A DNA stretch of 64,000 bases from Heteronotia binoei (lineage: Eukaryota). How positions within the stretch are numbered: position 1 is the first letter of the stretch; every line of letters begins with the position of its first letter. Of the stretch, positions 3,561 to 33,600 are shown in pieces. Position numbers and translations under genes: made by a program. Location: the NCBI RefSeq assembly GCF_032191835.1, contig NC_083226.1, positions 132,308,001 to 132,372,000 on the forward strand, in the 5' to 3' direction. The notes beneath the pieces are model-generated. The model was not told the DNA's origin and searched no databases. It was given only the letters and a program-made list of their open reading frames with translations.

Positions 3561-4094
3561 CAGCAAATGCTAGCTGATATCGTTACGGCACTTTCTGCAT
3601 TGTTTTTCTGGATAGTTCTGGGAGATCAAGTCAGCTTTGCAACTGATATTCCATAATAGATGTGGTGAGGCTTAAAATTCTCTGTAACTGAAGAGGTTTC
3701 CTAGATGTTAATTCCTCCCTTTCTTTGAGGAGCTCATAGTAATACACAAGGTTCTCCCCTATTCATTCATTTTATTGTTGTAACATCTCTATGAGGTACT
3801 TTAGGCAGAGGGAAACTAGCCCAAGCCACCCACAAAACTTCAGCATAATAAGGGTTTGATACTGATTCCCCCAGACTGATTTATTAGAAACTATAGTCAG
3901 CGGATTGCACCTTAGGAAGCTTATAGGCTATAAAATGAAGTGCTTTATCTCTAGTCCACCTCTTGCTCAGTGACTTTTGCTCCACAAGCTTTCTGCCAAG
4001 GAGATGATTTATACCAAGAAATTAGGTAACAGAATGGTAAGGTAGAAGGGACCACACCACTTAAAAAGTGCAAGGGAATATATACAACTACATT

Positions 4095-4193
4095 AAGGAT
4101 GCAATCCTAAAAACACTCTCCTGAAAGGCAAGCACCACTTTATAAATCAAAACTTACTTCAAAGTAGATGTGCTTGGGATTATACTTCAAGAT
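4095..4193. repeat. Short (~90 bp) palindromic MITE-like repeat
   Basis: Imperfect terminal inversion TGCAATCCTAA...TTGGGATTATA. Similar copies at 11887-11977 and 63728-63815. Confidence 0.45.
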
Positions 4194-4589
4194 TTAAATA
4201 ATCTTGACTATACTCCAGAAAGGAATTGCTCTCAGGTGCACAGCAAGTCTCAGGTACATAAGCAAATGGCCAAACTTGTTTAACATAAGAGTCACATAGA
4301 ATAAACGTCAGATGTCTGAGGGCCACAAGACATGAATGTCAGATGCTTGAGAGCCACAAGACAGGAAGGGTGGGAGTGAGGCAAATAGATGGGGGAGGGA
4401 GAGGTGGAAAGAAACAAAATTTAAATGCCTTTTCCAAGCCAGCTGACAGGGTAGTGGGGGCTTTGAGAACCACACAATATCTGTGAAAGAGCTATGTGGC
4501 CTCCCTCCCAAGCTGCAGTTTGGCCAACTGTTATATATTACCTTAAATTAGAATAAAATGTTTCTTAAGCAATTACATGTACAAGGTCT

Positions 4590-6575: not shown

Positions 6576-8807
6576 GACACTTTCATCAGCCACAATCACC
6601 ATGAGAACTGAACTTAACGATATCTTACCAAAGCAAGTGTCGGAAGAAACACATGGGTGACTGGAAGAGTTTGTAATGAACATCTGTCCCCTCTTTGTGC
6701 TCAACATGTCCCACTACCAAGGCTGAGGAGAGCAAAGCCAGGAGGTGCAGTAAATGTCATCAGCCTGTGTTCCTTTAACACCATCGCCAGCACCTGGTAT
6801 CTCAATAACAGACTGCTTGGAGACCAGGCTAATCTCTTTCTGCTTCCAAAACTAGCAGACCACTAAGAAAATACACTTAGATATATTTAAAAAAACTTTT
6901 ATCCTTACAACAATATTGTCCACCTACCAGCTTATTAACCACTCTGAAAACCACTATATATATTAAATTATCAAAATTGTTCTGGGATTGTTTTCTTATT
7001 TATATACTAAGGCAAGGAGTGTCATATCTCTGTACAGAATTTTGCCTAGAAAGTTGGATACATAAATAAGTACAGGATATTACAGGACATGCCGCCTTTT
7101 ACTGCATGAAGTCACTGCAGGGATAGACGACAACGTGCAATTACAACACTAGATCATCTAGCATTGTACCCTACTCTGAAATCACAGGGTCAAGAGATAA
7201 TGCACTGTGGTTTCCATGACAGGAGCATTCAAGACATGCAGTCTGAACTGAATGTGTCTTGCCGGATGCATTCCCAACTTACATGAGGAACAGTCTACTT
7301 CAATTTTTATGACCTCATTGTATTTTAAAACAATCCCTTGAAAACAAATTCCAGAGACTTCTTAAAAAAAAAAAAAGGTACAGAAGCTAATGTAATTTTG
7401 CAATTCGCAACATATTTTTCCTGGTTCAGGTGCTGTTGCATTTTATACAGAAACTTTTTTTAAAGATGTCAGAACTACTGGAAACAATTTTTTACAAGAA
7501 GAAAAATGCAGCTGTTTTCTAACACAAACTTTAAAAGGTTAATATAAACTGAGTTTTCCTAAATGAAAATCGTAAGATGCACTTCAAAACATACAGACAA
7601 GAATTAAATATTATTGTGTAAAGAAACTACACAGCCAATTTGAATTTAGTTTTTACAAGAAAGACTACAAATAAAACACATCATTTCTGTGTAAACAAAC
7701 CTTAAGACATACTTATATTTTGTCATATATGTGAGAAGCTGCATTCAAACTGGGGTTTCTTATTACATAAAACAGGTATATTAATACACCATATAGAATG
7801 ACAAGCACGTGGAAAAATACAATTTCCTTGAAGAAGTGATGTCTATGCAAGAAACCTGATTCATGAGGATCAGTTCTAAAACTTTCAGAACTTTAGGTTG
7901 TATTGTCCAAAGCTTCTCTGCTAGCCTTGAGGAGGATAAATCTACATTCAGGCAATAGCAAATAACTTCACCAAGCAAATATCTAGACTGATACAAGCAA
8001 TACCAACAACCGGTTTCTTATTTACTGCATTTATACAGGAAGAACATCCAAAGGTATTCTCCTGTTGCTAAATTCTGCAAAATACCACTAATGTTTCAGC
8101 ACCACAGAGGTCTGTTGATGAATAACACCAATGTGTAAAAAGAAAAAAGAGGGGGGGGGGATGAATGCTTCCATCTTTTTCTGACAGTAGAAAGTTGGCT
8201 AGGATCTACTTTTATGATTTATAAAACACAAAAATCCATTAAAGGTAAAAAATTAATTCAGTAAAAATTATCAGGATAACTTCTTCATAAGGTTTAAGTC
8301 GTGTGGTCCCCACTATTTTAAGCACGCTGATAAAAAAGTCAAGTTTTTTTGTGTTTTTTTTTAAAAAGATGCATACAGGGACAGAAATGTTGGCAGCTTC
8401 TAATTCAGAGAACTCAGTCAGGATTTGTTTAATCAGTTTTTTTACCCAAAACTGTCTTCAAGCATTCTTAATAGTGCAATATTATTGAGTTTATTCCAGC
8501 CTAAGCATATTAAAATAAAAAAATATATAAAAAAATAAAAATAAAATCAGTGGGCTTTGACATTAATAGGATTATACTATGAATGTTTGACCTCCAAAGT
8601 ACTATAACTTATGACTTCCAATGAAAGTGCAACACGAGTCTGAAAGTACAACATGAGTCTGTTGGGCCTCAGAAATCCATAATTTTCTTATTTTCTCAGA
8701 CAGTTAGCTATTATCATTTCGCCAATGACTGAAGCATTAGTTAATTTACCTACACAAAACCAAATCTTATTTCATAAGGTTTTTTTGAAGATTATTCTTA
8801 ATAATTT

Positions 8808-9053
<246 letters not shown>

Positions 9054-10039
9054 TCAGTAAGTGTCACAGATCTAGCAAAAAAGAACAAGCAGCAGTTGCT
9101 GAGCTTGGCTGGCAACATCAGCTGAACACTTCTGCAGACTACAATTGGCAACCAGCAAGTTTCAGTAAAATACAGTTCAATACTTGATATTCTTGTCAAA
9201 GAATACGTCTATACAATAAGTCAGTACAATCCTGAAGTAGAAGTTCAGAAGCTCATTTGATTTATATGAAGATGCAAGGAATACATTAAATGGACATTGT
9301 CCAGGTGAAAGGAGTAGCAGGAAAACGAGCACACACTTGATCAAGAAGAGAATAAATGTATAATTCAAAGACATGGTTTATTAATTAACAGCCAAAAGAC
9401 AATTATGTCCATGCCGAATCTACAATAGTTATTTCTTCTTATGCCAATAAAGGTAACTGAACTGAACTATAAACTGCTGTAATCACTGGAAACAATAAAA
9501 ATTGGTTAACATACTACACACATAACTACAGTGGATTTATCTGAGAATATACAGAAAATCTTGTAACATCCTGGAGTTTATAAGAATGTAAAGCCAATTA
9601 AATAAGGCAGCTAGGCAATAACAGAGAAAATTTAGATATGAAATAGTCTTTTAAAAACTCATGAGAAGTCTGCATTAAAAATAGGGCTTTTTCAATATTG
9701 AAGGTCCTCACCTTGTGTACCTAGGGTAAGCTGATTCATGAAAAACATTTATGTAGAATTTTTAAAATGTATGTAGAATTAAACTGTTAGAATTTTTATG
9801 TTGAATATTTTACAAGTGTGCCTATAACAGTGCTGTGCTATACCTGAAAAGAATCTAGAATCATTGTCAGGGTTCACCTTATGCCAATATGTTAATAACA
9901 ATGTATCTGGAAGCTGAATAACTTCTTAAGAAGTCTATAGCGTCTTAAGAACAATGCTTAACGCTGGTTAATTGGACAGAATACCATTGGGTGTAACGTA
10001 AGAACCCACAGCACAGAATTCCATTTACCACACCATTTA

Positions 10040-10186
<147 letters not shown>

Positions 10187-10240
10187 CTAAAGGGGAAAAA
10201 CATCAGATGAAGAAATTCTAAAAACATATTTTGGAATTTA

Positions 10241-10372
<132 letters not shown>

Positions 10373-11029
10373 TCATTAAAAACAGCTTTGGAACAAAGAA
10401 CTTGTTCAGGCTCAATATGCTCTCCAAGAAGCACATTCTGTGCATTTTTACTCAGAAGTGAGTCCCACTTAGTTTTTTTTATTTCTTTATTTTATTATTT
10501 AGACTTTTAGGCTCAGCAAGGCTTACATCAGAGTAAAAACACAACGATCTAAACAATATGAATTAAACATTAAAACACACTACAGTTCCAGATGACAAAT
10601 AAATTGAATTAAGATTGCAGCCGAGAGTGCCATATTGCTTGCTGTCCTGTCGCTGTCCTCATCCAAAGGCCTGGTGGAACATTCTCTGCCTTACATGCCC
10701 TGCAAAAAGGTAGCAAATCCTGCAGGGCACGATGTTATCTGGCAGAGTTCTACTAGGCAGTGGCCAGGGCAGAGAAGGACTAAATAGGACTAACTCTAAC
10801 TCAAGCGTATATAGGATTTTAACAAATTTTGTTTCATGAATTAACATCAAATGACACAGAGGTAGCTTTTCAATAAACAGTGGTTTACTTCCACAGTAAC
10901 TTTAGCAGTAGAGAACTTGGCATTTTTAACATTCATACCTCCTAACATAGCAGTTATTAAAAGGCAGTTTTTATTAAAGGAACATAATTAACGCAGCACG
11001 TTCTCTATATATAATTCAGATTACATTTA

Positions 11030-11251
<222 letters not shown>

Positions 11252-11293
11252 TTATATTACGGAATCAGAGAATTGATCCCCTTTTCTTCTTAC

Positions 11294-11321
11294 CAGTAAG
11301 CAAAATATTAGGTCTCCTCAT
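11294..11321 (-). CDS. AK6: Adenylate kinase 6, exon 1 (28 nt coding)
   Basis: ATG AGG AGA CCT AAT ATT TTG CTT ACT G|GTAAG gives MRRPNILLT. The five exons sum to 516 nt, or 171 aa plus stop. Confidence 0.93.
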
Positions 11322-11660
11322 AGTCACTTCGCCGACTCTACCCCAGTCCAGAAAGTTGTCACAGAGAAAGCACGTGCGACTTCTGAGAGGGCCTTCGCCA
11401 ACCCTGCTGAGACAGGCGCGTAGTAAGGACGTCACCAGTCTTCGCTCTTCTTTCTCCCTTCCGCTCGTAGGCACGGGCTGTGAATTGAGATTTACTTACG
11501 TGGTTGTTTGTTTTTTCGGCGAGCGGGGGGGAATTCCATTAAGTTTTTTTTCGGTGACCTTTGGGCGATTTCGGGGGGACTGAATTAAAGAGTGGATATG
11601 ATATTTATTACGGGCGGCTCGTGAAACCCTAAGGGCCGAGGTGTAAAGGAGGTCCCACTC
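11322..11660. promoter_or_regulatory. CpG-rich bidirectional promoter between AK6 (-) and RAD17 (+)
   Basis: CpG-dense stretch directly upstream of the AK6 ATG, with E-box CACGTG (11371-11376) and CRE-like GACGTCA (11428-11434). Head-to-head gene arrangement. Confidence 0.7.
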
Positions 11661-11886
11661 CTTGGAGAATCCTGAATGGCCTAAAACAGGAGGGGAAATA
11701 AAAGGTATTTTCCATTATAACTTAACATAACAGAAGGGTTAGGCCACAGCTGTAGCGTAGGAGAGAAACGCGGATAGCATCAAGGGAGCAGCGCTTGCAA
11801 GCTGTTGGATCATCGCACAGATAGAGCCACTCCGCTTTGGTCGCTAGCAGATTTTCTCCCACACCCAGACTGTCATAATTTATGCG

Positions 11887-11977
11887 CAGTGTAATCCTAA
11901 ACATATTCACTAAGCATATTTATCCACTGGGCCCTAATGGAGCTTGCACACCTAGAAGGCATGCTTAGCATTGCAGC
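11887..11977. repeat. Short palindromic MITE-like repeat
   Basis: GTGTAATCCTAAACAT ... ATGCTTAGCATTGCAG imperfect terminal inversion. Confidence 0.45.
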
Positions 11978-12803
11978 CACAGTCTCCTTTCTTCGCAAAG
12001 TGCTTGTTACCTTCCCTCGTGTTTATAAAAGAGAAAGGCGCTCCTTAGAAAGACCAGTCACTTTCCCCCAATGTCGTAAATTCTCTCCGTACTTCCTTCC
12101 CCCCCGCCGCGGACGGGCTGGACGATTCTGAAACAATATTTGTGTTCCATTATTTTAAACATGTTTTGCAGAACTGGGGTGTGCTTAAATTTTGTGTAAT
12201 CTGTAGTGAAGGTATTATAATTCTTTGTTTTGTTTTAATTTTGTTACACTTCTATCTGTAAATGTGCAAATTGCCCCAAATTTATTTTGCCTCTCTACAG
12301 TTTCTTAGAAATTGTCATATTTGCTAGCAATATTTAGTGGGTAAAAAGTTTCTGTGGTTATGTGAAGAGCTCCAAAGGGACTTCCACAAACTGGGTGAGT
12401 GGGTGATATTGCGGCAAATGAAGTCCAGTGTTAGTAATGCACTTCAGGGAAAATCCCCCCCCCCCCAACTTCAAATATAGGCTAATAAAGTCTGAACTTG
12501 CTGAAACTGTGAGGGGGAAAGATCTTGGGGTAGTAATGGATAACTCAATGGAAGTGTCAACTCAGTGTGCTGCATGTGAATAAGGCAAACTCGACGTTAG
12601 AGATTATCAGGAAAGGGACTGAGAATAAAACAGCCAATATTGTAATGCCCCTCTATAGATTTATGGTGCGGCCTCATTTGAAATACCGTGTACAGGTCTG
12701 GTCCCCCTATCTCAAAAAAGACATTGCAGAGGTGGAAGAAGTGCAAAGGAGGGCAACCAAGATGATTTGGGGGTTTGGAGCACTTTCCTATGAGAAAAGG
12801 TCG

Positions 12804-13440
12804 CAGCGGTGTCAAACTCATTTGTTATGAGGGCTGGCTCTGACACAAATGAGGCTTTGTTCAGCTGGGCCATGCTGGGCCAGGCCATGTGTGCACCTAT
12901 TCAAGATTAGGTAGCAGCAGATCTTGAATTCAGCAGGAGCTCACAGGAGCAGAGCTCCTGAACCTTTCTGATGGTTCCCCCCCTCCTCCCCACCTTGTCC
13001 ATTTAATAGTTGGTGCAGCTGCATAACAATCCCTGGATGAGCTCCACCACCTATTTTTCTACAAAACGACCTCTGGGTAGCGGAGATATACATTTTATAA
13101 AGAACACAGACAAACACAAATATGTTTTTTTTTAAACTTAAAACATGCTTAAAATGTTAGCACTCATTGGTATTAAAGATGCTTTCTTTATATTTCTCCC
13201 ATGGGATCCAGGGAATTGGGCAAAGGAAGCTCTGGCTTTTCCTTCCCCAGGGGACTGGGGGAGGGAGGAGGAGCCTCAGCCAATGGAGAGAATCGAGGTT
13301 TTGCTCTGTAGCTCCTGTGCAATTGAGCAAGCTGTTATGTGGAAGGAAGCAACATATAGGGAGAAGGAAGCAGATGATAGCCTGATAGGAGCCCTCTGGG
13401 GACCTGATTCGGCCCCCAAACTGCATGTTTGACTCCCCTG
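12804..13440. mobile_element. Non-autonomous hAT-type DNA transposon (MITE)
   Basis: Terminal inverted repeats CAGCGGTGTCAAAC / GTTTGACTCCCCTG. Same family as 45658-46076, in opposite orientation. Confidence 0.75.
12918..13075. mobile_element. Small MITE nested in the hAT MITE
   Basis: Flanked by 8-bp duplication GGTAGCAG (12910-12917) / GGTAGCGG (13076-13083). Absent from the sister copy near 45960. Confidence 0.7.
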
Positions 13441-13829
13441 GTCTAGGACTTGGGAATGTTCAATCTGGAGAAGAGGAGATGGGGGGGGGGCATTTGCTCT
13501 CTTTAAGTATTTGAAGGGCTGCCACTTAGAGGAGGGCAGGGAGCTGTTCCTGTTGGCAACAGAGGATAGGACTTGCAGTAATGGGTTTAAATTAAGAGTG
13601 GGGAAGTACCAGGTGGATATTAGGAAAAACTTTTTTACAGTAAGAGTTGTTCAACAGCAGAATCAGCTACCTAGGTCAGTGTGGTCATCTCCCCCTCACT
13701 GGCGGTCTTTAAGCAGCGGCTGGATGAATACTTGTCAGAGATGTTCTGGGCTGATCATGCACTAAGCAGGGGTTTGGACTCAATGGCCCGTATGACGCCT
13801 TCCAACTCTCCAATTCTTTGAGACAGTTA

Positions 13830-14250
13830 TCAGAGTCATTTTTCTCCTTCTCCCAAAATAGTAGAAATCAAGGATATCCAATGAAGCTGATTAGCAGTAT
13901 GTTCAGGACTGACAAAAGGAAATTCTACTTTACACAGAGAGTGATTAAAATGTGGAATTTTCTGCCAGAGGATACAGTGATGGCCACAGGGATAAATAGC
14001 TTTAAACCGGGATTAGATAGATTTATCTTCCATTAATGTATTAATGGATATTAACCATGGTGATTGAAGAGAAACTCCACATTCAGAGGCATTAAACCTC
14101 TGAATCTCAGAGCCAGGAGGCAATATCAGGGGATGGCTTCAGCTATGTTATTGTCTGTCCAGAGGAACTGGTTGGCCATTGTGTGAGACAGGATGCTGGA
14201 CTAGATGGGCCATTGGTTTGATCCAGCCGCGCTCTTCTTATGTTGTTATG
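13830..14250 (+). mobile_element. CR1 LINE 3' end fragment
   Basis: MKLISSMFRTDKRKFYFTQRVIKMWN followed by the CR1 3' tail GGACTAGATGGGCCATTGG...CTTCTTATGTT. Confidence 0.8.
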
Positions 14251-14344
14251 TGTGATGTCTTAAATATGAATCCTGAAACCTCTTCTCACAATGGGTTTAA
14301 ATAGAATCTTTAGCTGCTTGTATTAACAGTAACCTTAATTTGGA

Positions 14345-14935
14345 GTTTTTTGAATTAATCTAGGCTAGTAAATTGAACCTCAAAATTAACAAGACAGAAA
14401 TGCTACTGGTGTACAGCAGGACTAACCTGGGATTAAAGGTGTCATCTGTTCTGAAGGAAACTGCTCTCCCCTTGAAGGAATAGGCCTGTGATTTGGGAAT
14501 GCTCTAGGACCCAGGCCTACTGCTGGAAAAGCAGGTAATAGCAGTGGCCAGGAGTGCCTTTTCCCTGTTTTGATTGGTTATCTGATTGTAGCATTTCTTG
14601 GACAGACAAGACCTAGTCTAAGTGATGCATGACCTGATTTCATCTAGATTAGTTTATTACAATGTACTCTATGTGAGGCTGCCCTTGAAAGGTGCTCAGA
14701 AACATCTTGGTACAGAATGCTGCAGCCAGGATGTTGACTGGAGTGGAATTTGGTATCCAGGGAGACATGTTTGTCAACTTCTGTTGATGTTTTTTGCCAA
14801 TGGGTGAAGACTTTTTTGTTTTATCTGGCATTCCCTCAGTGATCCCTCTTTCCTGCCCTATGTTTTAATAGTTTTTATATTTTAGCTTTTGTTTTAATTC
14901 TGTGTTTTTGTTTGTTTTAAATTGTTATTAAACTA
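14345..14935 (+). mobile_element. Degenerate L2 LINE 3' fragment
   Basis: Decayed LNxxKTE and ISSRLVYYNVLYVRLPLK motifs matching the L2 at 4650-6506. Confidence 0.6.
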
Positions 14936-14940
14936 TTTTA

Positions 14941-15190
14941 AGTTTTGTGTAGTGATTAAGTGTTCTGATTCTAATCTCCTCTCCTCCACATGCGGTTGCT
15001 TGTGTGACCTTGGGTTAGTCACAAGTTCTTGCAGAGCTGTTCCCTCAAGAGCAGTTATAGAAAAGCTCTCTTCAGCTCCACCTACCTCACAGGGTGTTTG
15101 TTGGGGGGGAGGGAAAGGGAAAGGAGTTTGTAAACTGCTCTGAGACTCAGAGTGAAGGGCAGAGTATAAATCCAATCTCTTCTCCTTTTT
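14941..15190 (+). mobile_element. tRNA-derived SINE (abundant family in this window)
   Basis: GTGTAGTGATTAAG head, CACCTACCTCACAGGGTGTTTGTTGGGGG core and ATAAATCCAATCTCTTC tail shared with several other copies. Confidence 0.75.
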
Positions 15191-15335
15191 TAAGATGTTT
15201 TTATGATATACGTTTTTAATCTTTTAGCCACCTTAATGACTCTCATGAGGGTGGAAAGATGCGGTATAAATTTGTAAATAAATAAATAAATGAGATATTG
15301 TTGTCCATAAAATTATTGAAATATACTCTTAACTT

Positions 15336-15700
15336 TGAATCCAGTGGCACCTTTAAGATCAACAAAATTTTATTCAAAGCGTGAGCTTTCGTGTGCATGC
15401 ACACTTTCTCAGATCAATTAAGTGGAATTTACCAGTCCATAAATATAATGCAGAGGTTGAACAGCAAATTAGCATGCAACATAATGAAGATGTTTTAACA
15501 GATGCAAATAGGAATAACAAGCTAAGTTTGTAAGGTTACCATTGTTTGGTGGAGAGCTGTCCATGGTTAGTATTTTGATTGGGGGGGCCATCAAGGAAGA
15601 ATAGATTTGCTGTACAGAGGAAGGCAACAGCAAACTACCCCTGCTTGTTTCAAGCCTTGAAAACTTCATGAAGGGATAACTATAAGTCAGTTGTGACTTG
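15336..15700 (-). mobile_element. Penelope-like fragment with decayed hammerhead (15383-15414)
   Basis: Minus strand reads CTGAGAA-A-GTGTG(CATG)CACAC-GAAA-GCTC, with core G8 changed to A. Pseudo-LTR tail matches 2625-2762. Confidence 0.6.
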
Positions 15701-15949
15701 GCAGCACTTTATTATTATTGTGGAACTACACAGGTGGAATAATCTCTCTCCTCAACATAAAATACCATTTTTAAGGTTAGAAGAAGAAATAAAACTTGCT
15801 TCATTGTGGGGAAAGAATGGTATCAGCTAATGGAACAGGGAGTAAGGAGTTAGTTCCTCAGTAACTATGTGCAAATCTGTTCAAGTTGATTTAATCCTGT
15901 GAAGTTTATTTACAAAAGTATTTTCTTGTTTTTTTTCTTTAAAAGATCA

Positions 15950-16015
15950 ATGGTGATATGCTTCGGATGGAAACTACAAAGATTGATGATGTCAAAGAAA
16001 ACTTCCAAAAGAAAG
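15950..16015 (+). CDS. RAD17: RAD17, candidate first coding exon (ATG at 15950 or 15986)
   Basis: Polypyrimidine tract and AG at 15944-15945, donor AAG|GTAGCT. Open phase-0 frame (MVICFGWKLQRL)MMSKKTSKRK joins VVDWVEPSF, like the recalled human long isoform MSKTFLRPKVSSTK|VTDWVDPSF. Confidence 0.6.
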
Positions 16016-16409
16016 GTAGCTTCAGTTAAAGTGGGTGATATATATTAATAATGGTCTTTGGGTGTGACTCTTCTGCGTACAGATGTCCATGAGTGGACAG
16101 GGTTCATGCCTCTTATGCTTCTATAGAAGATTGTGACCTTGTGGGACTGAATGAACAGTACTTCACTGGCTGCTGAGCTGTGACTTGTAAACATCACTCA
16201 ACCTGCATTTTGTAAAGGTAGGATAAAATGGTCAGTCTTGCCCAACTGATTTGAGGCTATTGACATTAGAGTTCTATAGTATTGCATACTGAGCCTACTT
16301 ATGGGAAATAAGTTTGGTTGAATATGGTGTGACTTCATGCTAAATGAATATATTGAATTATCAAGGGACTGAAGAATGCTTTTGTTCTAAATGTTCATAA
16401 ACGGTTTCA

Positions 16410-17080
16410 TACATTTATTTATTTAATTTGTACCCCACACCCTTTTCCCACAGGGGACTCAGGGTTGTTTACATTATAAAATACAATAAATACAAATACA
16501 ATACAAATATATAGAAATGAAATGAATAGAACAATCAAAACATCAATTTAACAACAAGTTTCTTGGAGAATTAAAACAACTGGCCTCCACTCCAGTTTGT
16601 AACATTAACCAAAGGCCATGCAGAACAAAGCAGCCTCACATGCCCTATGGAAATCTAGAAGATCCCACTGGGCCTGGACTTCCCCAGGGAGCTGATTCCA
16701 CAGAAAATCCAGAAAGGGGCAACCACTGAAAATACTCTTGCCCTGGTGGTTGACAAGTGAGCAACTTGTGGGCCAGGAATCTGTAGAAGGCTCTTTGATG
16801 ATGAGGAAGCAAGGAGGATCATACTCAGAGTGACAGTCCTGTAGGCAGGATGGTCCCAAACCATTTAGGGCTTTTAGATCAAAACCAGCTCTTTTAATAT
16901 GGTGACTAGAAGCCAGTGCAGGTGCTGAAGTATTGATGTTATGCACATATAACATCAGGGGGACTCAGCCAGCAGTCTGGCTGTCACATTAGGTACTTCT
17001 TGAAGCGGCTGAAGTATCTTCAAAGGCAGCACTACATAGAATACATTTAATCTGCAAGTGCCTGTCATTTGGATCATAGT
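16410..17080 (-). mobile_element. Degenerate L2 LINE 3' fragment
   Basis: LKALNGLGPSCLQD...LWNQLPGEV and an (AAAT)n tail, like the L2 at 4650. Confidence 0.7.
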
Positions 17081-17221
17081 GTCAACAGGACAGATAGAGG
17101 GCAGCTGGTGGGCTTAGTGCAGGGCACATGTTTGGTGTAGTGACAGGGAGAGTGTAACCTGTGATGTCCATTTTGACAGGGAGAGTGTAACCTGTGATAT
17201 CCTTAATCCTTTCCAAAATTC

Positions 17222-17316
17222 GAGACCAAAATGATTTTAGTAAGTAAGTAAGTAAGTTTTATTCTTATATCCCGCCCTCCCCCGCCAAAGGCGGGCTCAG
17301 GGCGGCTCACAGACAT
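17222..17316 (-). mobile_element. Very short L2 3' tail inserted in the L1
   Basis: (TAAG)n followed by TATCCCGCCCTCCCCGCC..GGCTCAGGGCGGCTCACA, nearly identical to the tail at 4684-4725. Confidence 0.75.
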
Positions 17317-20210
17317 GACCATTGGACAGGACCACCAGCAGTGTATAAACAAATCATCTCCCCCACAATTCTTCCAGCATAAGGAAGAAGTATGCGGCAA
17401 AATATAGTGCAACCTTTTGAGCATCAAATACTACTGGAACAGAATTTTTTGAGTAATCAGGAATGAGCTAGGAATAGCTCTAAATAAAAATAAAAATTTC
17501 GGAAAAATGAAGGATTTAATAATTTGAATTTTCTCATTCCAAGGAATAAAAGAAGACTTCCTATTCTTTTGCAAGCTAATTATATCATTATTTAAAAGAT
17601 GGTGATTGATTTTAAAAAATATCACTCAAGTTTATGGGAATATTCACCTCTAAATATGTCCAAAACTTATCAATCTTCTTAAAATGATAATTAGAATAAA
17701 TAAAGTCTCGAACAGTGTTAGATATTACCATGGGATATAAGATGGACTTAGATGAATTAGATTTAAGCCCAGAAATAGAAGCAAACAAAGATAGTAAATT
17801 TGCTATAGCCGTTAGTGAAGAATCAGGATTGGTTACAAAAAGTATCAAGTCATCTGCAAACAAAGAAAGTTTAATATGCTGGTTATTATATGTACCCCCA
17901 CAAATTCAGGAATGTTACGGAGAGCATTGACAAGAGGCTCAATTGCCAGAGCAAAAAGGAGGGGGGAAAGGGGACAGCCTTGCCTGGTGTCACAGGATAA
18001 CTGAAATTCTTCTGAATCTAAATTGTTGACATGAATAATAGCAGACAGGGAGTGGTATAAAGCGCGAATAATTTTGATAAATACCGGACCAAATTCCATC
18101 TTTTCCAACAGTTTGATAAGGTAAGGGGCTTCAACAGAATCAAAGGATAAAATAAAAGAAGAGTCTACATTGAATTTCCTACAATATTGTATAATATTGA
18201 GAACCTTTCTGGTATTATCAGTTAGTTCACGGTTCAGGATAAACCCAGATTGGTCAGAGTGAATGTAAGTCCCAATAAAGGTATTAAGACGTGAAACTAT
18301 AGCCGCTGTAAAGATTTTATAATCGCAGTTGAGAAGCGAAATAGGCCTATAGGAACTAGGTTCCAACAAGTCTTTGCCTTTCTTAGGGAGAACTATAATT
18401 TTTGCTTGAGACCAAGTGGCAGAAAAATTATTCGAAGTTACAAATTGATTACAAAAATCAGCTAGAGTAGGGGCCAACAAAGTGCTAAAAAATTCATAAA
18501 ACTCAGGAATAAATCCATCTCTGCCAGGCGATTTGTTGGGTTTTAATTATTTAATGGTCTCTTGAATTTCAAGTGCCGTGAATGGTTGCTCCAAGAAGGA
18601 TTAAATTGCTGAAGAAAGCGGTTTAAGATAGGAGTGAGATTGGAGTGAGTATCTAAAAAAGATTTAATAAGTTCAGGTGAGGGATGCTGAGACAAATATA
18701 AAACAATAATATTGTTTAAAGACACCCACAATGTCTTTAGCTGAATATTTCAAGGAGCCAGATATAGTCCGAATAGAAGGGACCGTCATTGAGGTTAATC
18801 TCTTTTTTACTTTCCATGCAAGAAGTTTGAGAAATTGAGGGGTTCGGAACCAGTACTTTTGTTTGACAAATGCTATTTGTTTCTGAATCTTGGAGACCTC
18901 TAACGAATCTAATTTTTTCCATTCTATAAGAAGATTTGAGTATACTTTTTTACTTCCGAACTTCCAACTTTTTGATGTTGGACAGCAACTCAGATCTAAT
19001 TCTCTCTTTTTCTTTTCTATATGAAGAGGCAATAGCCATGAACCTGCCCCAAATAACAGCCTTGAAGGAGTCCCAAACAGTATGTTGGGGAACCCCACAC
19101 TCCAAATTAAATTGAAAAAATTCCTTAATATCTGCTTCAATAGAATCAGTAACAGATTTCATTGGGAGAAGTTATTTGTCTCCAAGCAAATGAAGTCGAA
19201 TTTTGGCCCATTATGTTCAAACCTCCTTCCACTCAAGCATGATCAGACCAGATCATAGGACCAATGTCTACTTGAGAAAAAAGTTAGAAATGGAATCAGA
19301 AACTAGAAGAAAATCAATCCTAGAATAAGTCTGGTGCCTAGAGGAAAAAAAGGCATAATCTCTCTTTGTTTGGTGCTTGAGTCTCCATATATCACAAAGA
19401 TTGTAAGATTGCAAAATATCATATAAAGTGTTATGAGACATCAATCCCTGGGGCTGAGAACAAGATTTACCTGGAGAGGGTAGGGAACAAGATTTACCTG
19501 GTGAGATCTGTCAAGAGAAGGATTAATTACGTAGTTGAGATCCCCTCCCAAAATAATAGGACCAGTATGAAAGTTCCTCAGTTTTGAAAAAGTATCCTCT
19601 AGAAACACGATCTGACCCTCATTGGGCGTATATACTGACGCCATTGTATATTGATGTCCATTAAAAATCCCATTGACAAAAACATAATGTCCGCTTGGGT
19701 CAATCAGCGTATTTTCTAAAACAAAACAAACTGATTTGCTAATCAAAATAGCCACTCCTCGTGCTTTAGAAGACCCCGGAGCCTGAATTTGGTAAACAAA
19801 AAAATTTAATTGAAAAACATTAAAATGATTATTCTTGAGATGCGTTTCTTGCAAAAAAACTACATCCGGTTTTTGACGAGAGATGGCAGAAGCAAAGCAC
19901 TTTTAAAAATTAAATTATTTAAACCATTGCAGTTCAAAGATAGAAATTTCAATTGACACTCGGCCATTTAAAAGGAGAACAATAAGAATATCACAAATCA
20001 TAACTCTTACACAGTAAGAATTCAGTAGCCTCATGTTGGCTGCCAAAAATATGCCTTTTAAATAACGCATGACCTTCGAAGTAGTTGAAAAGTCCATGAA
20101 GGACTTGCCACGTAAGCCCTTTCTGCCAGCAAAAAAAATAAAAAATGCACATGTAAGAATTAAGAAGCACCCCCATAAATATTCCAAAATGTTGCCATAA
20201 ACTCACACTG

Positions 20211-20803
20211 TGTCATGGGTGCTGGGGACCCTTCAGAGGAAGTTGAGTCTGATGAGGAAACTGTGCCCCTGCCACCTGCACCAGTGCCCCTGCCTCCTGC
20301 TGGAGAAGATCCTAGCCCCCCTGCCTCGCCCTCTCGGGTGGCTCGTGTGCGTGACCGCCTCCGGCAGGACCTCAGGGATCGGAGGAGGGCGGCACGCTCA
20401 CAAGCAAGACGCTCCCTGAGCCCTGAGTTCTGAGAGGATTCTGGCCCTTCTAAGAGCAAGGATGCTTGAGTGGTAACAGGATCCTGGCTGCCTCCCTGAG
20501 CCAGCAATTAGCCCAAACGGGCAACAGCCAGCAGAGGGCTATATAGCTGTGGGCTTTGGGAGGAAGCTTTGTGGAAGCAACTAGTCATCTCCCTGACATT
20601 CTAGCATCCACTCCGGCTTGACTTTGGTTCCTGACTCCCTGACTTTGGCTTTGGACTTCTGGACTCCCTGACCTCGGCTTCTGGACCTCAGACCTGCGAT
20701 ACTTCTACAGTGATTCGGATTTGGCGCCTCGGACCCTCCTGCTTACTGGCTACAGACCTCGGACTGCCTCTGGACTTTGCCTGACCCGGCCCCAGCCGTG
20801 ACA
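20211..20803 (+). repeat. 5' LTR (593 bp)
   Basis: TGTCATGG...CCGTGACA with TATATA at 20540-20545. No difference from the 3' LTR found by eye. Confidence 0.96.
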
Positions 20804-20805
20804 GA

Positions 20806-20815
20806 TTGCTTCCAC
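20806..20815 (+). promoter_or_regulatory. Self-priming primer binding site (non-tRNA)
   Basis: TTGCTTCCAC, 2 nt after the LTR, is the exact reverse complement of GTGGAAGCAA at 20571-20580, 31 nt downstream of the TATA start. No TGG-type tRNA PBS. Confidence 0.8.
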
Positions 20816-20837
20816 CGACAAACACCCACTCCACAGG

Positions 20838-21728
20838 ATGGATGCTGAAGCAAGTGAAACCACAGAACTACTGGCTGCGCTCCAAGCCCAGGTACAGCAG
20901 CTAACACAGGCAGTAGTGCACTTGCAGCAACAACCTGCGGCCAGTGCTCCAGCCAAGTGCCCAGTTCCCCCACCTGACAGATTTGGGGGTGCCGTGGAAG
21001 AATTTCCTGCCTTCCTAGCACAGTGTCGGCTGTACTTTGAACTGAGAGCACGGGACTTCCTCAATGACAAAACCAAGGTGTGTTTCGTCATCAGTCTGTT
21101 AAAGGGGCAGGCGGCCAAATGGGCCACACCCTTACTGGTCGCGTCCTCTCCCCTACTGACTGATTACCAGGGGTTTGAGGCCCACCTGTCTGCTGCTTTC
21201 TCAAACCCAGTCCAAGCAGCCACAGCCAACCGGAAGATCAGGGCACTGAAACAAGGCAACTCCTCGGTGGCTCAATATGCCACTGAATTCAAGCTCCTGA
21301 CCCAGGACTTGGCGTGGAATGAGGCTGCCCAGATGGACCAGTTTACTGAGGGGTTGGCAGAGGAGGTCCTGGATGAACTGGCCAGGGTGGAGCAGCCACC
21401 CACGCTCCAAGAACTTATCACCCTCTGCCTCCGCATCGATGGCCGCCTGGAAAGTCGCCGCCAAGCCAAGACCAGAGGGCGCCAGCTCCCTGCGCCGTGC
21501 TACCTGGCTCCTCGCCCGTCCCCAGCTAGTACCAGCACCAAGGATGAGCCTATGCAGCTTGGAGCTGCTCGACCCCGCCTGACCCCAGAGGAAAAGACCA
21601 GACGCCGCACGCAGAATCTGTGCCTCTACTGCGGCACGGCAGGCCACTATGCCTCTGGCTGCCCTGCTAAGCATCGGATACCTGGACCTTCGCTGCCACC
21701 GCTGCCAAAAGGGCAGCCCCAGGCGTAA
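20838..21728 (+). CDS. Gag (capsid plus CCHC zinc knuckle), 296 aa
   Basis: Open ORF with N-terminal coiled coil, PDRFGG...FLAQC capsid region and [14 protein letters not shown] knuckle. Confidence 0.95.
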
Positions 21729-24700
21729 GTGGACCCCCCAGCCTGGGGCGACTAGCTGGGTCCTCCGAACAGCGGGCTGATACCCCAGGGCCATTCCTGC
21801 TACCAGTCAAACTCCGTCTGCCTGACGAACGCTGGCTGTTCGTGTATGCCATGCTGGACTCGGGAGCGGCCCACTGCTTTATAGATGCCGCCTTTGTGAA
21901 GCAGCACCAGATCCCTGTGCAGACAAAAGGGATTCCGTCGCTGGTGGAGGCTATTGACGGGCGCCTCCTCCGTTCTGGCCCCGTCACCCAGGAGACCTGT
22001 CCCATCACCTTCCACGTCCAGCAGCACCAAGAACAGCTGCGGTTTGATGTCGCCCGCATGCCTCGCTTCCCGCTGATTCTAGGCCTTTCCTGGCTGAAGC
22101 TGCACAACCCCATCGTGGACTGGGCCCAGCAGGAACTACGCTTCCGAGACCCATGCCCCCATCTGACTCCTCCCACCACTCTAGCAGCTGGCATCCCGAG
22201 TGGTGGTCCTCAGCTCCCTCAGAAGTATGTGGACTTTGCTGATGTCTTCGAAGAGACAGGAGCTGATCAGCTTCCCCCTCACCGGCCCTACGACTGTGCC
22301 ATTGATTTGGTACCTGGGGCACCACTCCCGGTGGGGCGTCTGTACCCAATGTCGGAGCCGGAGTTGGCAGCTCTGCGAGACTTCCTGGACAAGAACCTGA
22401 AACGCGGATTCATCCGACCCTCAACCTCTCCCCTATCTGCTCCAGTGCTCTTCGTGAAGAAGAAAAGTGGGGAGCTCCGGCTGTGCAATGACTACCGGGC
22501 CCTGAACAAGATCACCATCCGCAACCGGTACCCTCTACCACTGATCCCTGAACTCTTGGATCGCCTAAAGGGGGCCCAAATCTACACCAAGCTGGACCTC
22601 CGTGGAGCGTACAATTTGGTGCGCATACGGCCCGGAGACGAATGGAAGACCGCGTTTGGGACCCGATACGGGCAGTACGAGCACCTGGTAATGCCCTTCG
22701 GACTGACCAATGCCCCCGCTGTCTTCCAGAGGTTCATGAATGACATATTCCGGGACCTGCTCGACCGCTTCGTGATCATATACCTGGATGACATCCTAAT
22801 TTACTCCCGCAATCCTGCCCAGCACGCCGAGCACGTCCGCCAGGTCCTGCAGCGCCTACGAGCCCATGGTCTCTACGCCAAGCTGGAGAAGTGCGACTTC
22901 GACCTGCGCTCCGTCGAGTTCCTTGGGCACATTGTGTCACCGCAGGGGATCCTCATGGACCCGAAAAAAGTAGAAGCGGTCCTGACCTGGCAGGCTCCTC
23001 AGAATCGCAAAGACCTGCAGCGGTTCCTCGGTTTTGCCAACTACTATCGGCAATTCATCCCGGCCTACGCATCCCTGACCACACCCCTGACTCAACTACT
23101 CCGCCCCAAAGAACCCTTCCACTGGTCCCCAGAGGCCGATAACGCCTTCTCCACCCTGAAGACTCGCTTTGCCACCGGGCCACTCCTGAGATACCCCGAC
23201 CCCCAGCTTCCCTTTACGGTGGAAGCTGATGCCTCCAACGTGGCCCTGGGAGCAGTCCTGTCCCAGCGCGAGGAGCCGTCCCAGCCACTGCAGCCCTGCG
23301 CCTATTACTCGCGGCAGCTCACTGCTGCAGAGAGGAACTATACCATCTGGGAGAGGGAGTTGCTCGCGATCAAGGCGGCGTTTGAGGTTTGGCGACATTA
23401 CCTCGAAGGGGCTCGCCACCCTGTTCAAGTGCTCACCGATCACCGGAACTTGGAACACCTCCAGACCACCCGCCGTCTCAACCAGCGCCAGATCCGGTGG
23501 TCCCTATTCTTCTCTCGCTTCGACTTCCGGATCTCCTACATCCCCCATACCCAGAACCGGAAAGCAGACGCGCTCTCCCGGAAACCGGAATACGCCCCTG
23601 CCTCAACTGAGACCGCGCCCGCTGCTCCAATCCTGCCGCCCTCAGTATTTGCAGCCACCTCCACTTCACCAGCACTCGTGGAGGACATTCGGGCTAGCCA
23701 GGCCAATGATCCCTGGGTCCAGCAACACCTCCAGGCTCTCCAAGATGACCCAACAGGGGAGTTCACGACTCGAGGCGGCCTCTTGCTACACCGCGAACGC
23801 CTCTATGTGCCGCCCGGGCCCTTGCGGGCAGAAGTGCTACGCCTGACCCACGACTCGTTACCCGCCGGGCACTTTGGACAGCATAAGACCACCCACTTGC
23901 TGACAAGGGAATTCTGGTGGCCACGAGTTCGCGCTGATGTTGCCCGCTATGTCAGCTCCTGTGACGTCTGCCGACGGGCCAAAGACATCCCAGCCAAACC
24001 CTCAGGGTTGCTGCAGCCCTTGCCCACATCTTCAGGACCCTGGGATACCATCTCGATGGACTTCATCACGGAACTTCCACGCTCCAAGGGTCAGACTTGT
24101 ATCTGGGTGGTCGTCGACCTATTTACCAAGATGGCCCACTTTGTTCCGTGCCCGAAACTCCCCACAGCTCAGGAGACGGCCCAGCTTTACCTGCAACACA
24201 TCTTTCGTCTGCATGGACTCCCAGCCCATCTGATCTCCGATCGGGGCCCTCAGTTCTCCTCTCGGTTCTGGCAAGCCCTCCATTCCAGCCTGGGTACTCG
24301 AGTGCACCTGTCCTCGGCCTACCACCCACAGACAGATGGCCAGACAGAGCGCACCAATGCCACGCTAGAGCAATATCTCCGCTGTTACACCTGTTACCAG
24401 CAGGATGACTGGACCACTCTATTGCCCCTAGCGGAGTTTGCATACAACAACGCGGTCCATTCATCCACCCAAATGACCCCGTTTGCTGCAACCTACGGGT
24501 ACCACCCTCGGTTCTTCCCAGCGATCCTACCACCCACGAATGTCCCCGCCGTCGATGCCTACCTGCAAGAACTCCGTGCCAGCCAAGACTTGCTCCGAGA
24601 GCAGCTACAGCAAGCCAAGGAGGCATATAAACGGGCTGCGGACCGAAAGAGGCAAGAAGGCCCTCCAGTGCAGCCGGGGGATCAGGTGTGGCTCTCAACT

Positions 24701-25357
24701 CGCTACCTGCGCCGGCCTGGTCGGTCTCACAAGCTGGATGCACGGTTCATTGGACCCTACCCCGTCGTTGAACAAATAAACCCCGTCGCCTTCAGGCTCC
24801 AGTTGCCACCCCACCTCCGCATTCACCCCGTGTTTCATCGCTCCCTCCTAGTTCCGGCTGCACCCCCTGACCCAGCTCGGACTCCTTCCCCACCGCCGCC
24901 ACCACCAGTGTTGGTGGATGACGAGGAAGAATATGAGGTGCGCCAGATCCTGGACTCCCGGTACCATCGTGGAGGCCTCCAGTACCTGGTGGACTGGGAG
25001 GGATACGGCCCAGAAGACCGGTCTTGGGAGCCCGAGGACAATCTTCATGCCCCGGACTTGGTGCACCAGTTCCACAACGACCACCCCGACCTTCCAGGTC
25101 CCTCGACGGAGGGGGGCCCTGGGGGGGGGGATAGTGTCATGGGTGCTGGGGACCCTTCAGAGGAAGTTGAGTCTGATGAGGAAACTGTGCCCCTGCCACC
25201 TGCACCAGTGCCCCTGCCTCCTGCTGGAGAAGATCCTAGCCCCCCTGCCTCGCCCTCTCGGGTGGCTCGTGTGCGTGACCGCCTCCGGCAGGACCTCAGG
25301 GATCGGAGGAGGGCGGCACGCTCACAAGCAAGACGCTCCCTGAGCCCTGAGTTCTGA
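21671..25357 (+). CDS. Pol polyprotein (protease, RT, RNase H, integrase, chromodomain), -1 frame relative to gag
   Basis: Frame open from 21671 (ORF track starts at 21842). Motifs [42 protein letters not shown] and [12 protein letters not shown]. Confidence 0.95.
25108..25134 (+). promoter_or_regulatory. Polypurine tract
   Basis: GGAGGGGGGCCCTGGGGGGGGGGATAG immediately before the 3' LTR. Confidence 0.8.
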
Positions 25358-25727
25358 GAGGATTCTGGCCCTTCTAAGAGCAAGGATGCTTGAGTGGTAA
25401 CAGGATCCTGGCTGCCTCCCTGAGCCAGCAATTAGCCCAAACGGGCAACAGCCAGCAGAGGGCTATATAGCTGTGGGCTTTGGGAGGAAGCTTTGTGGAA
25501 GCAACTAGTCATCTCCCTGACATTCTAGCATCCACTCCGGCTTGACTTTGGTTCCTGACTCCCTGACTTTGGCTTTGGACTTCTGGACTCCCTGACCTCG
25601 GCTTCTGGACCTCAGACCTGCGATACTTCTACAGTGATTCGGATTTGGCGCCTCGGACCCTCCTGCTTACTGGCTACAGACCTCGGACTGCCTCTGGACT
25701 TTGCCTGACCCGGCCCCAGCCGTGACA
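25135..25727 (+). repeat. 3' LTR (593 bp)
   Basis: Same sequence as 20211-20803, followed by CACTG. Confidence 0.96.
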
Positions 25728-26016
25728 CACTGCCCATAACTTGAACAAGTAAGAACCAATTCCAGTGGCTTAACATGAAAAGCCACCAACCACGAAAAAC
25801 ATCAACACTTTTTGCTAACCCCAGATAGGGAAAACAACAGTCAATATTTGTGAGTATGTATGTAATTGAGCATACAAAAAAGTAAAGACTCACTTCAAGA
25901 AGCTCCACTTAAAAATTAACAACAAAGTTATAAGAACAAAGCTATAAGAAAAGCCAAAAGTCAATGTACACAGGTATATTTAAATTTGAACTATAAAAAT
26001 ATAAAGACTTCATTAG

Positions 26017-30689: not shown

Positions 30690-33600
30690 TCATTGTTTAA
30701 TGGCTTTTCTCCCTGCCCACCCTTAAACAGCTGGACATGCTTTTCTGCATTTGCTTTTTTCTAATGCAAAGATAAGGAATTCCCTCTTGGGATGGAACCA
30801 GAAAACAAAAGGTCGCTTGCATAGACCAATTACTGTAGTAACACAGGCAGCAGAGAGCTCTGGGATAGAGCTCTTTGCAGAGAGCTCTTTGTAGCAGAGA
30901 AGTGCTACAAGGGTGAGGTTTGTGGCTTAGCAGCTGGGGGAGTTGCTGAAAACTTCTGAGTTCGTGTGAAGGTGATTGTTGCTGATTGATTAGGAGTGAC
31001 TGTGTTCCCCACCCTCTTTGCATTATTAAGCTGCACCTTGCCAGAGGCGTGAGCCAAAGGGCGAGAGGTAAAGGGCTCTTGGCCTGTGGCTCTTAGCCTG
31101 GGGACCTATGTAAGAACTAGGAACCCAGATTCCTTGTGTTCCCAATAAGGTAAGCAGACTCTCCAGGCAGGGAGCCACATAAACAGGGTTTAAAAGAGGA
31201 ATGTATGTTTTTAAAAAGCTATCATGAAGGTAGAATGCCAGCAGGGGGTGGGGGCTTTCCAGTATTTTGCATTGAGTGTCGCATGTATGACTATCTGCTC
31301 ACAGGACAGAAGTCTTGGGTGTGTGCTTGATGCAAGGAGCTCCTGGTCCTCAGGTAACGAGTTCGTACCCTTGAGGCCGAGGTGACTGCCCTGGAGAAGC
31401 AGAGACAGTAAGACACTTGGAGAAGACTCTCGGGGACATGTTAGATGAGGCCCGCTCTAAACGTGGCAGCCCCGTTGCTGCCAGGGAGCATGAGGATCGA
31501 GAGGGAACAGGGCACCGGGCTGAGGATAAGGGGAATGCGCCCTCAGAAGGGACCTCTTCTTCAGTTGGTGAGCGGGAATCCTTTTGCGCCAAGGAACCAT
31601 CCCTGGGCAGGGAGAGAGGGGGGGTCTTGGTAGTTGGTGATTCGATCCTTAGGCAAGTAGAGAGCTGGGTGGCAAAACCGTGTACTGACCGTATGGTGAC
31701 TTGCCTGCCTGGTGCAAAGGTAGCGGACATTACGCGTGTAGTAGATAGGCTGATAGACAGTGCTGGCGAGGAGCCAGTGGTCGGGGTGCATGTTGGCACC
31801 AACTATGTGGGGAAATGCAGTGAGGTCCTGGAGGAAAAATTTAGGCTGCTAGGCGGGAGATTTAAGCCCAGGACCTCCAAAGTAGCCTTCTCAGAAGTGT
31901 TACCTGTTCCACGTGTAGGGCAGGAGAGACAGGCACAAATTAGAAGTCTCAATGTGTGGATGAGACGATGGCGTAAGAAGGAAGGTTTTAAGTTTGTTAG
32001 GCACTGGGATGCTTTCTGGAACAAGCGGGAGCTGTGCAAAAAAGATGGTCTCCACTTGTCCCTGGATGGAACCAGGCTGCTGGCGCTTAAAATCAAAAAG
32101 GTGGCAGAGCAGTTTTTAAACTAAATCTTGGGGGAAAGCCGACAGGAGATTAAATGTCTCTGGTTCGGGAGGACTCATCTCAAAGAGATGAAGGGTTAGC
32201 TGTTACTTTTCTACCAGGTAATGGACCAGAGTTGTCCACTGAGATGGTGACAAACAGAATGGACTGCCTGCCAGAGTCTCGAGGCGGCAGGAGGAAGGTG
32301 GCAGGCCTAGCTCGCCTGGGAAATTATAGATGTTTGTACACAAATGCTAGAAGTGTTCAAAGTAAAATTGGTGAGTTGGAATGTTTAGTGTTGGGAGAAA
32401 ACATAGACATTGTGGGAATTTCAGAAACTTGGTGGAATGAGGAGAATCAGTGGGACACGGTGATTCCTGGATATGAGTTATATCGGAAGGATAGGGAGGG
32501 AAGGGTTGGAGGTGGGGTGGCTCTGTATGTCAGAGAGGGCATACGGTCCAGTAAGACTGAGGTCAGAGAATTAGATTCCCTTCTAGAAATGCTTTGGGTT
32601 GAAATAGAGGGTCCAAAAGGAAATTTAACTATGGGAGTTTGTTATCGCCCACCAAATCAAAAGATAGAGGATGACTATAATATGATAGAAGGCTTAAAGA
32701 TAGTGTCGTCATAGGTGATTTTAACTACCCGCAGATTTATTTGGTCAATATGTGTTCTGGTCGAGAGAAAGAGATTGAATTTCTAGATGCTTTCAATGAC
32801 TGTGCTATGGAGCAGATGGTCTCTGAACCTACCAGGGGTGGGACGATCCTGGATTTGACCCTAAGTAATGCCCAAGACTTGGTGAGAGATGTAAAAGTGA
32901 TCGCCCCGCTTGGGAGCAGTGACCATAACGTTATTGATTTCACCATTTGTATAAATAGAGAGTTGCCCCAAAAGACCAGCACAACCACGTTTAACTTTAA
33001 AAGGGGTAAATTCTCTGAGATGAGGCATGTGAAGAGGAAACTGAAAGGAAAGGTAAATACGGTCAAAACCCTTGGGGAAGCTTGGAGGCTTTTTAAAACT
33101 ACAATCCTAGAAGCTCAGATAAAATATATACCACAAGTTAGGAAAGGCACAAACAGGTATAAGAGAAGGCCTGCATGGTTAACAAACAAAGTAATGGAAG
33201 CTGTAAAAGGACTCCTTTAAGCGGTGGAAAGCTAGTCCAAGTGAGATTAATAAAAGGGAACACAGGCAGTGGCAAATCAAATGCAAGACTGTGATCAGGC
33301 AGGCAAAAAGGGACTATGAGGAGCATATTGCAAAAAACATAAAGACCAACAATAAAAATTTCTTCAAATACATTAGAAGCAGGAAACCAGCCAGGGAGGC
33401 AGTGGGGCCCTTGGATGACCAAGGGGTCAAAGGATTACTGAAGGAGGATAGGGAAATGGCTGAGAAGCTGAATGCATTTTTTTTTTGCCTCCGTCTTCAC
33501 TGTGGAAGATGAGACGTGTTTCCCTCTCCAGAACCACTTATATTGGAAGGAGTGTTGAAAGACCTGAGTCAGATTGAGGTGACAAGAGAGGAGGTCCTAC

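Follow-up and report, generated by a model that had tools for sequence, protein, structure and literature searches.

The fission-yeast retrotransposon Tf1 begins its reverse transcription from the first 11 nt of its own RNA, which act as primer after RNase H cleavage (PMC7175516). Such self-priming is treated as a trait common to the Tf1/sushi chromoviruses, vertebrate members included, in PMC6317226, PMC10085805 and PMC4600332, which refer to Butler et al. 2001 (J Mol Evol 52:260); it is this work that PMC10085805 and PMC6317226 cite for the vertebrate Tf1/sushi elements. As far as we found, experimental demonstrations of self-priming come from fission-yeast elements only, and the case for vertebrates is a sequence-based proposal. 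Full-length chromoviruses have previously been reported from reptiles, Anolis and turtles included (PMC3670739), and our literature search found no paper that deals specifically with the architecture of priming in a reptile element.

Here we analyse a 64-kb stretch of gecko DNA (hereafter the window) in which one region is very probably the leader of a very recent Tf1/sushi chromovirus insertion that primes itself in the manner of Tf1, a reading based on its sequence and on that of its relatives. As self-priming has already been described as a property of this clade, it is the expected mode here, and the original prediction for the locus overstated its implied novelty given that both the mechanism in the group and full-length reptile chromoviruses (PMC3670739) were known. 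The general picture thus stays as it was: Specialists already expect self-priming of the group, and many intact copies exist in reptiles, frogs and fish.

An intact and very young sushi-type chromovirus

The element is an intact chromovirus of 5.5 kb (20211-25727) on the plus strand, and the finding reported here concerns the R-U5-PBS leader at its 5' end (Table 1). It had been announced as an intact amniote element, and indeed both LTRs, gag, pol and the target-site duplication are complete in this gecko genome. The LTRs show zero differences over 593 bp, so the insertion must be very young, with an estimated age below approximately 1 million years if typical vertebrate substitution rates apply. 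Identical LTRs, open gag and pol frames and the intact target-site duplication make it a plausible currently active amniote element.

Table 1. Features of the chromovirus and its leader in the 64-kb window.
Feature	Position	Strand	Remarks
5' target-site duplication CACTG	20206-20210	+	same 5 nt directly after 3' LTR
5' LTR, 593 bp, TGTCA...TGACA termini	20211-20803	+	100% identical to 25135-25727
TATA box (TATATAG) of LTR promoter	20540-20546	+	TATATA at 20540-20545; read from sequence
Predicted self-primer GTGGAAGCAA, first 10 nt of transcript, start of R	20571-20580	+	perfect PBS complement; predicted start site
Post-primer segment, possible 5' arm of second ("pretzel") duplex	20581-20588	+	RNAduplex
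U5 end and 2-nt spacer GA, possible 3' arm of second duplex	20798-20805	+	
PBS TTGCTTCCAC, complementary to own R start	20806-20815	+	
gag, 296 aa, PEG10/RTL-type capsid and CCHC knuckle	20838-21728	+	Pfam DUF4939, Retrotrans_gag, Ty3_capsid
pol frame: PR, RT, RNase H, IN, SH3_Tf2-1, chromodomain	21671-25357	+	-1 relative to gag
Probable -1 frameshift signal A_AAA_GGG with stem 21716-21725/21740-21749 and possible pseudoknot arm	21707-21764	+	
Purine-rich tract (ten-G run, then ATAG)	25110-25134	+	adjoins 3' LTR; read from sequence
3' LTR	25135-25727	+	holds second primer-sequence copy at 25495-25504
3' target-site duplication CACTG	25728-25732	+	copy of 20206-20210

The gag product has a sole PDB match, the PEG10 capsid (7LGA), and is 47-48% identical to marsupial PEG10. 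In pol, the Pfam domains RVP_2, RVT_1, RT_RNaseH, Integrase_H2C2, rve, SH3_Tf2-1 and Chromo follow the Ty3/gypsy order with a C-terminal chromodomain; its top PDB match is Ty3 Gag-Pol (7Q5B), and chromoviruses from squamates, fish, frog and fungi are among its matches with 44-63% identity. The LTR termini match the Sushi integrase motifs TGTYANR / CNTNACA (motifs from PMC3601003). Placed by its PEG10-type gag, its chromodomain, its SH3_Tf2-1 domain and the pairwise identities, the element is a sushi-type chromovirus of the Tf1/sushi group and may be viewed as an active relative that stands close to the ancestor of PEG10. The purine-rich tract next to the 3' LTR probably functions as its plus-strand primer.

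The pol frame runs for 223 nt into the 3' LTR (25135-25357, the same sequence as 20211-20433), and the first third of U3 codes for an acidic/proline-rich C-terminal tail beyond the chromodomain; a pol tail within the LTR is also found in four of the relatives introduced below (L002, L003, L008 and L009). Elsewhere in the window, a large exon of MARVELD2 (tricellulin) at 57616-58794 on the plus strand is 92% identical to that of Euleptes europaea, 90% to that of Sphaerodactylus townsendi and 78-86% to those of other squamates, which identifies the host as a gekkotan lizard and bears out the term amniote in the original prediction. The retrotransposon sits ca. 32 kb upstream of this exon on the same strand. 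Remains of non-LTR retrotransposons lie at 5420-6220 (minus strand), 17845-18480 (minus strand) and 31417-34598 (plus strand); two of them are reverse-transcriptase fragments, and one is longer, with GDSL-esterase-like, endonuclease and reverse-transcriptase frames that are broken up.

The gag-pol junction

Across the gag-pol overlap of the window element (21705-21771), no canonical X_XXY_YYZ slippery heptamer was found. The motif A_AAA_G(G/A)G is conserved at the corresponding place in four relatives (L002, 1705-1771; L003, 1460-1526; L004, 985-1051; L008, 9441-9507), and the 10-bp stem of the probable frameshift signal shows compensatory changes in four relatives. Beyond this stem, the loop GGACCC (21731-21736) could form a pseudoknot with GGGTCC (21759-21764). 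In three sister elements (L005, L006 and L009), the gag frame has G_GGA_AAC instead, which we take to be the slippery site of PEG10.

Complementarity between the R start and the PBS

The 5' LTR ends with A20803 (...GTGACA) and is followed by a 2-nt spacer, GA, and then by the PBS. Over its full length, this PBS, TTGCTTCCAC (20806-20815), is complementary to GTGGAAGCAA (20571-20580), whose first base lies 31 nt downstream of the first T of TATATA; these positions, as well as those of TATATA (20540-20545), GTCA (20584-20587) and TGAC (20799-20802), were all exact in the original prediction. This match is the longest complement between the LTR and the 27 nt that follow it (20804-20830). Over the entire 64-kb window, the 10-mer is found three times, as the PBS itself and, as complement, once per LTR, compared to 0.24 expected matches, and a count of three was reached in none of 100 shuffles. 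When the RNA is folded from 20571, its nt 1-10 are paired with the PBS in both the minimum-free-energy (MFE) and the centroid structure, with a predicted mean pair probability of 0.97.

Such a match could in principle be a product of chance without any function. In 5,000 dinucleotide shuffles of the LTR, a complement of at least 10 nt to the 30 nt after the LTR arose in 22 (0.0044), a figure that counts matches at any position within these 30 nt and ignores both the fixed position and the spacing from the TATA box. At 0.44% of shuffles, a match of this kind is not astronomically rare, and the window match on its own is uncommon, yet not decisive. The relatives of the element are what reduces a functionless coincidence to a practically negligible probability: The arrangement recurs at the same two positions in seven more elements with six more distinct primers, and a diverged stickleback copy retains both sites in an LTR that has otherwise diverged by ca. 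11-16%.

Compensatory changes among relatives

Searches with gag and pol found relatives that are mostly squamate (Gekko, Podarcis, Anolis, Phrynocephalus, snakes, tuatara), while a look-up of entries identical to the gag product of the window gave no match. We compared the DNA around ten of them (L001 to L010), and both R start and PBS are present in seven. Their primer/PBS pairs are GTGCTGGCAA / TTGCCAGCAC in L002 and, shared with it, in the full copy L008 of Gekko japonicus; GTGAACGCAA / TTGCGTTCAC in L003, which is from the same sequencing run as L002; GTGGGGGCAA / TTGCCCCCAC in L005; a 12-nt pair, GTCTTGGACAAA, in L007 of the snake Ahaetulla prasina; GAGGCAAACAA / TTGTTTGCCTC in L009, from the same sequencing run as L004; and GTGAGGTATT / AATACCTCAC in the stickleback element L010. 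The remaining three (L001, L004 and L006) show the PBS side only, in the same form as in the other elements. Among these, the Phrynocephalus element L001 was rejected as a matched pair since no R start corresponds to its PBS-like TTGCTCCCAC, and its 5' LTR is apparently truncated or decayed.

The layout of the window element recurs in all seven relatives, each of which has a perfect complement of 10 to 12 nt that starts at a G, in agreement with the 10-nt primer that had been predicted for the window. A TATA-like box precedes the primer by 31-32 nt in six of the seven (seven of eight elements with the window), the exception being L003, where we looked for a TATA box and recognised none. In 8/8 elements, the PBS begins 1-2 nt past the terminal CA of the LTR, and the distance from primer to PBS is 214-383 nt. 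The boundaries of the complementarity are sharp: In all eight, a T precedes the primer and a C follows the PBS, so that this T x C mismatch leaves no upstream extension of the pairing, and on the far side the pairing likewise ends after 10-12 nt, with the exception of one G.U neighbour in L007.

The primers themselves differ among elements, ranging from variants of the form GTG-NNNN-CAA to quite different primers of 11-12 nt, and each difference is compensated in the element's own PBS. Among the seven distinct primer/PBS sequences (L002 being identical to L008), the PBS differs at 2-7 of 10 positions; primer and PBS of the same element pair at 10/10 positions throughout compared to a mean of 5.4/10 across elements. 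Unconstrained RNAalifold analysis of six aligned leaders gave the primer-PBS helix as its sole prediction, with two-sided changes in four of the ten pairs. This alignment was made without L007 because MAFFT placed the snake primer on a nearby near-repeat, and the breaks that the helix shows for L010 are an artefact of gap placement, the element's own pairing being perfect. With the RNA starting at the proposed +1, the predicted primer-PBS pair probability is 0.93-0.98.

Covariation across the family had been set as a test of the prediction, and its outcome is positive, with fully compensated differences in eight elements from gecko to stickleback. Chance is therefore excluded as the source of the complementarity across the family; the counts of own versus cross pairing and the RNAalifold covariation effectively refute it. 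The position of the complement and the compensated changes in relatives argue for the original reading as self-priming of the Tf1 type, and the compensatory changes lend comparative support to the self-priming proposal for vertebrates.

At the stickleback locus of L010, the LTRs of one copy (8770-13872) are 427 bp long and 100% identical, and adjacent to this copy lies a second one (15669-18552) that is partial and ca. 10% diverged. In this second copy, whose LTR is ca. 11-16% diverged, both sites are unchanged. The NCBI gene model P0038 at this locus (4001-18901) takes in both copies.

Host RNAs as a possible alternative primer

A host RNA, be it a tRNA or a half or fragment of one, might prime at 20806-20815. 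In that case the match to the R start would have another role, e.g., to circularise the leader for packaging, to allow dimerisation or to control translation. Retroviral leaders do contain long-range pairings that have functions other than priming, and the PBS has been compared directly with a single tRNA-like gene, to which it shows no complement of 6 nt or more. This gene is a tRNA-Thr(AGT)-like sequence found by ARAGORN at 54209-54286 on the minus strand, its Rfam score (29 bits, E = 0.059) just equals the threshold for tRNA, and it may be a decayed tRNA gene or the head of a tRNA-derived SINE. The trinucleotide TGG, complement of the CCA-3' end of tRNAs, is absent between LTR end and gag ATG in the window and was not found after the LTR in any of the eight elements. 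Support for the claim that the element has no tRNA-complementary PBS comes from the missing TGG and, as a direct check of matches, from the one tRNA-like gene.

The comparison of relatives bears on the same question. Elements of the same sequencing run (L002 and L003; L004 and L009) carry different PBSs, and since each fits its own LTR, a single conserved host primer is very unlikely. More generally, the PBSs differ at 2-7/10 positions, same-run pairs included, and each fits only the R start of its own element or of one with the same primer. The duplex moreover ends at the exact position where DNA synthesis would give the LTR end plus 1-2 nt, and the family is described as self-priming in PMC10085805 and PMC6317226. 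On the sequence data of the family, which argue strongly against a conserved host tRNA primer, we give very little credence to priming by a host RNA.

The proposed mechanism and its start site

Beyond the complementarity, we infer a start site, a cleavage and a priming step that would together make up the following cycle of Tf1-type self-priming. RNA polymerase II would start at G20571, 31 nt after the TATA box, and nt 1-10 of the RNA are predicted to fold back onto their exact complement, the PBS at 20806-20815. Cleavage after nt 10 by the RNase H that the element itself encodes would follow, on the model of Tf1 RNA, which is cut between nt 11 and nt 12. From the 3'-OH freed in this way, the minus strand would be primed through the GA spacer and then U5 and R, followed by transfer to the 3' R, and the purine tract at 25110-25134 would prime the plus strand. 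The GA spacer would supply two extra bases past the CA, to be trimmed by integrase. Priming requires a spacer of 1-2 nt because synthesis from there gives an LTR end with extra bases after the CA, and a purely structural role would not demand it.

In the general retroviral scheme, the attached RNA primer is copied by plus-strand strong-stop DNA. A changed R start could in this way overwrite the PBS within one cycle, and such copying of the primer into the PBS may account for the lockstep change of both sites between families. A self-primed PBS would need to fit nothing but its own R start, and by drifting freely the pair might become an "address code" specific to its lineage, different between sushi-type families resident in one squamate genome, a scenario that we regard as rather unlikely. 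If it were true, co-resident families could avoid cross-priming each other and possibly escape from defences that read fixed tRNA-type PBSs (repression by tRNA fragments or zinc-finger proteins).

Self-priming might also proceed with a different geometry, the RNA starting upstream of 20571 or at multiple sites and the primer being internal (released by two cuts) or 5'-tailed. We give little credence to this variant, which draws on the predicted nature of the start at 20571, on the missing TATA box of L003 and on the alternative start sites that regulate related fission-yeast elements (PMC5341516) but is at odds with the conserved 31-32 nt from TATA-like box to primer in seven of eight elements and with a complementarity whose end, set by the T x C mismatch of all elements, coincides with the proposed +1. 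Folding predictions point in the same direction: With 20 nt added at the 5' end, the primer-PBS probability is 0.32 instead of 0.97 in the window, 0.001 instead of 0.94 in L008 and 0.16 instead of 0.97 in L010 (segments 20551-20580, 8184-8213 and 8891-8920, respectively), with no effect in L002, L003, L005 and L007. These lower probabilities with an upstream start arise because U3 sequence competes for the primer, in L008 in the shape of an inverted repeat (TTGCCAGCAG...GTGCTGGCAA). The U3 sequence just upstream of +1 may be a switch that masks the primer depending on the start site, or its pairing may be due to chance.

Flanking duplexes and leader folding

The original prediction had extended the pairing past a small internal loop to GTCA and TGAC. 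RNAduplex does give such a second duplex for the window, an interrupted helix of 7 bp (C20581-G20804, U20582-A20803, a bulged A20583 and G20584..U20588 with G20798..C20802), so the pairing exists, but it is no better than in shuffled sequence (p = 0.27). GUCA is part of a local hairpin in the full-length MFE fold, where its partner is UGAC at 20594-20597 and not TGAC at 20799-20802, and TGACA is also under constraint as the integrase end of the LTR.

Over the eight elements, pairing of the post-primer segment with the pre-PBS segment is significant (Fisher p = 4e-4), with the strongest duplexes in L009 (13 bp, p = 0.0005), L002 (p = 0.012) and L008 (p = 0.038). At the family level, there is therefore support for a second duplex, the counterpart of a flanking duplex in the Tf1 "pretzel", which has two of them (PMC10085805). 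When RNAduplex was used to look for the third "pretzel" duplex, or for second duplexes over long range, the results were no better than those of shuffled controls, and no element supports the third. The whole leader folds no better than shuffled sequence (z = 0.38), and an Rfam search of the element returned no known RNA family.

Polyadenylation signals and repeats in the LTR

None of 13 polyadenylation hexamers (AATAAA and 12 variants) occurs in the window LTR (20211-20803, 25135-25727), and none of six hexamers checked was found in the R-U5 of L002, L003, L005 and L008. AATAAA is present ca. 65 nt before the LTR end in L007 and L010, and GATAAA in L009. An LTR that lacks a poly(A) hexamer leaves the R/U5 boundary, which is needed for strand transfer, undefined, and this counts against the self-priming model.

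The R-U5 of the window (20581-20803) is rich in the short repeats CTGAC, TGACC, GGACT, GACCT and TGGAC, at ca. 10 times the level of shuffled sequence, and these motifs are present in six to seven of the eight elements (window, L002, L003, L005 and L007-L010). TGACCT is the complement of the nuclear-receptor half-site AGGTCA. The repeats could be nuclear-receptor half-sites or, equally, an RNA packaging signal.

Comparison with known systems

Tf1 and Tf2 of Schizosaccharomyces pombe, Tj1, Tosmo1-3 and Tcry1 are, like the element in the window, chromodomain-bearing Ty3/gypsy elements that have a post-LTR PBS complementary to the 5' end of their own mRNA, an end that is predicted in the case of the window. 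They have no tRNA-type PBS (PMC7175516, PMC10085805 and PMC4600332), and no TGG follows the LTR in the gecko element. The primer of Tf1 has 11 nt compared to the 10 nt predicted here. While gag and pol of the fission-yeast elements form a single open reading frame or are divided by an in-frame stop (PMC10085805, PMC4600332), those of the gecko element are in separate frames with a -1 shift. Of the three duplexes that form the "pretzel" of Tf1 (PMC10085805), the window shows a clear central duplex, with the second at chance level and the third unsupported.

Vertebrate Tf1/sushi elements such as sushi-ichi of Takifugu belong to the same clade with the same predicted self-priming, the host being a squamate in our case. 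The stickleback element L010 has a layout identical to that of the window, with a 10-nt primer that follows the TATA box at 31 nt. Sushi LTRs carry AATAAA near their 3' end (PMC3601003), as do L007 and L010, whereas the subfamily of the window element does not.

PEG10, a domesticated sushi-type gag-pol gene of therians, shares the -1 gag/pol frameshift and a gag with 47-48% identity. To our knowledge, PEG10 has no LTRs, PBS, reverse transcriptase or integrase and does not transpose, whereas the window element has all four parts and looks active. Ty3/gypsy elements primed by tRNAs, e.g., Ty3, which is the top structure match of pol, have the same order of pol domains. Their PBS begins with TGG and matches the 3' end of a tRNA, whereas the PBS of the gecko element instead matches its own R.
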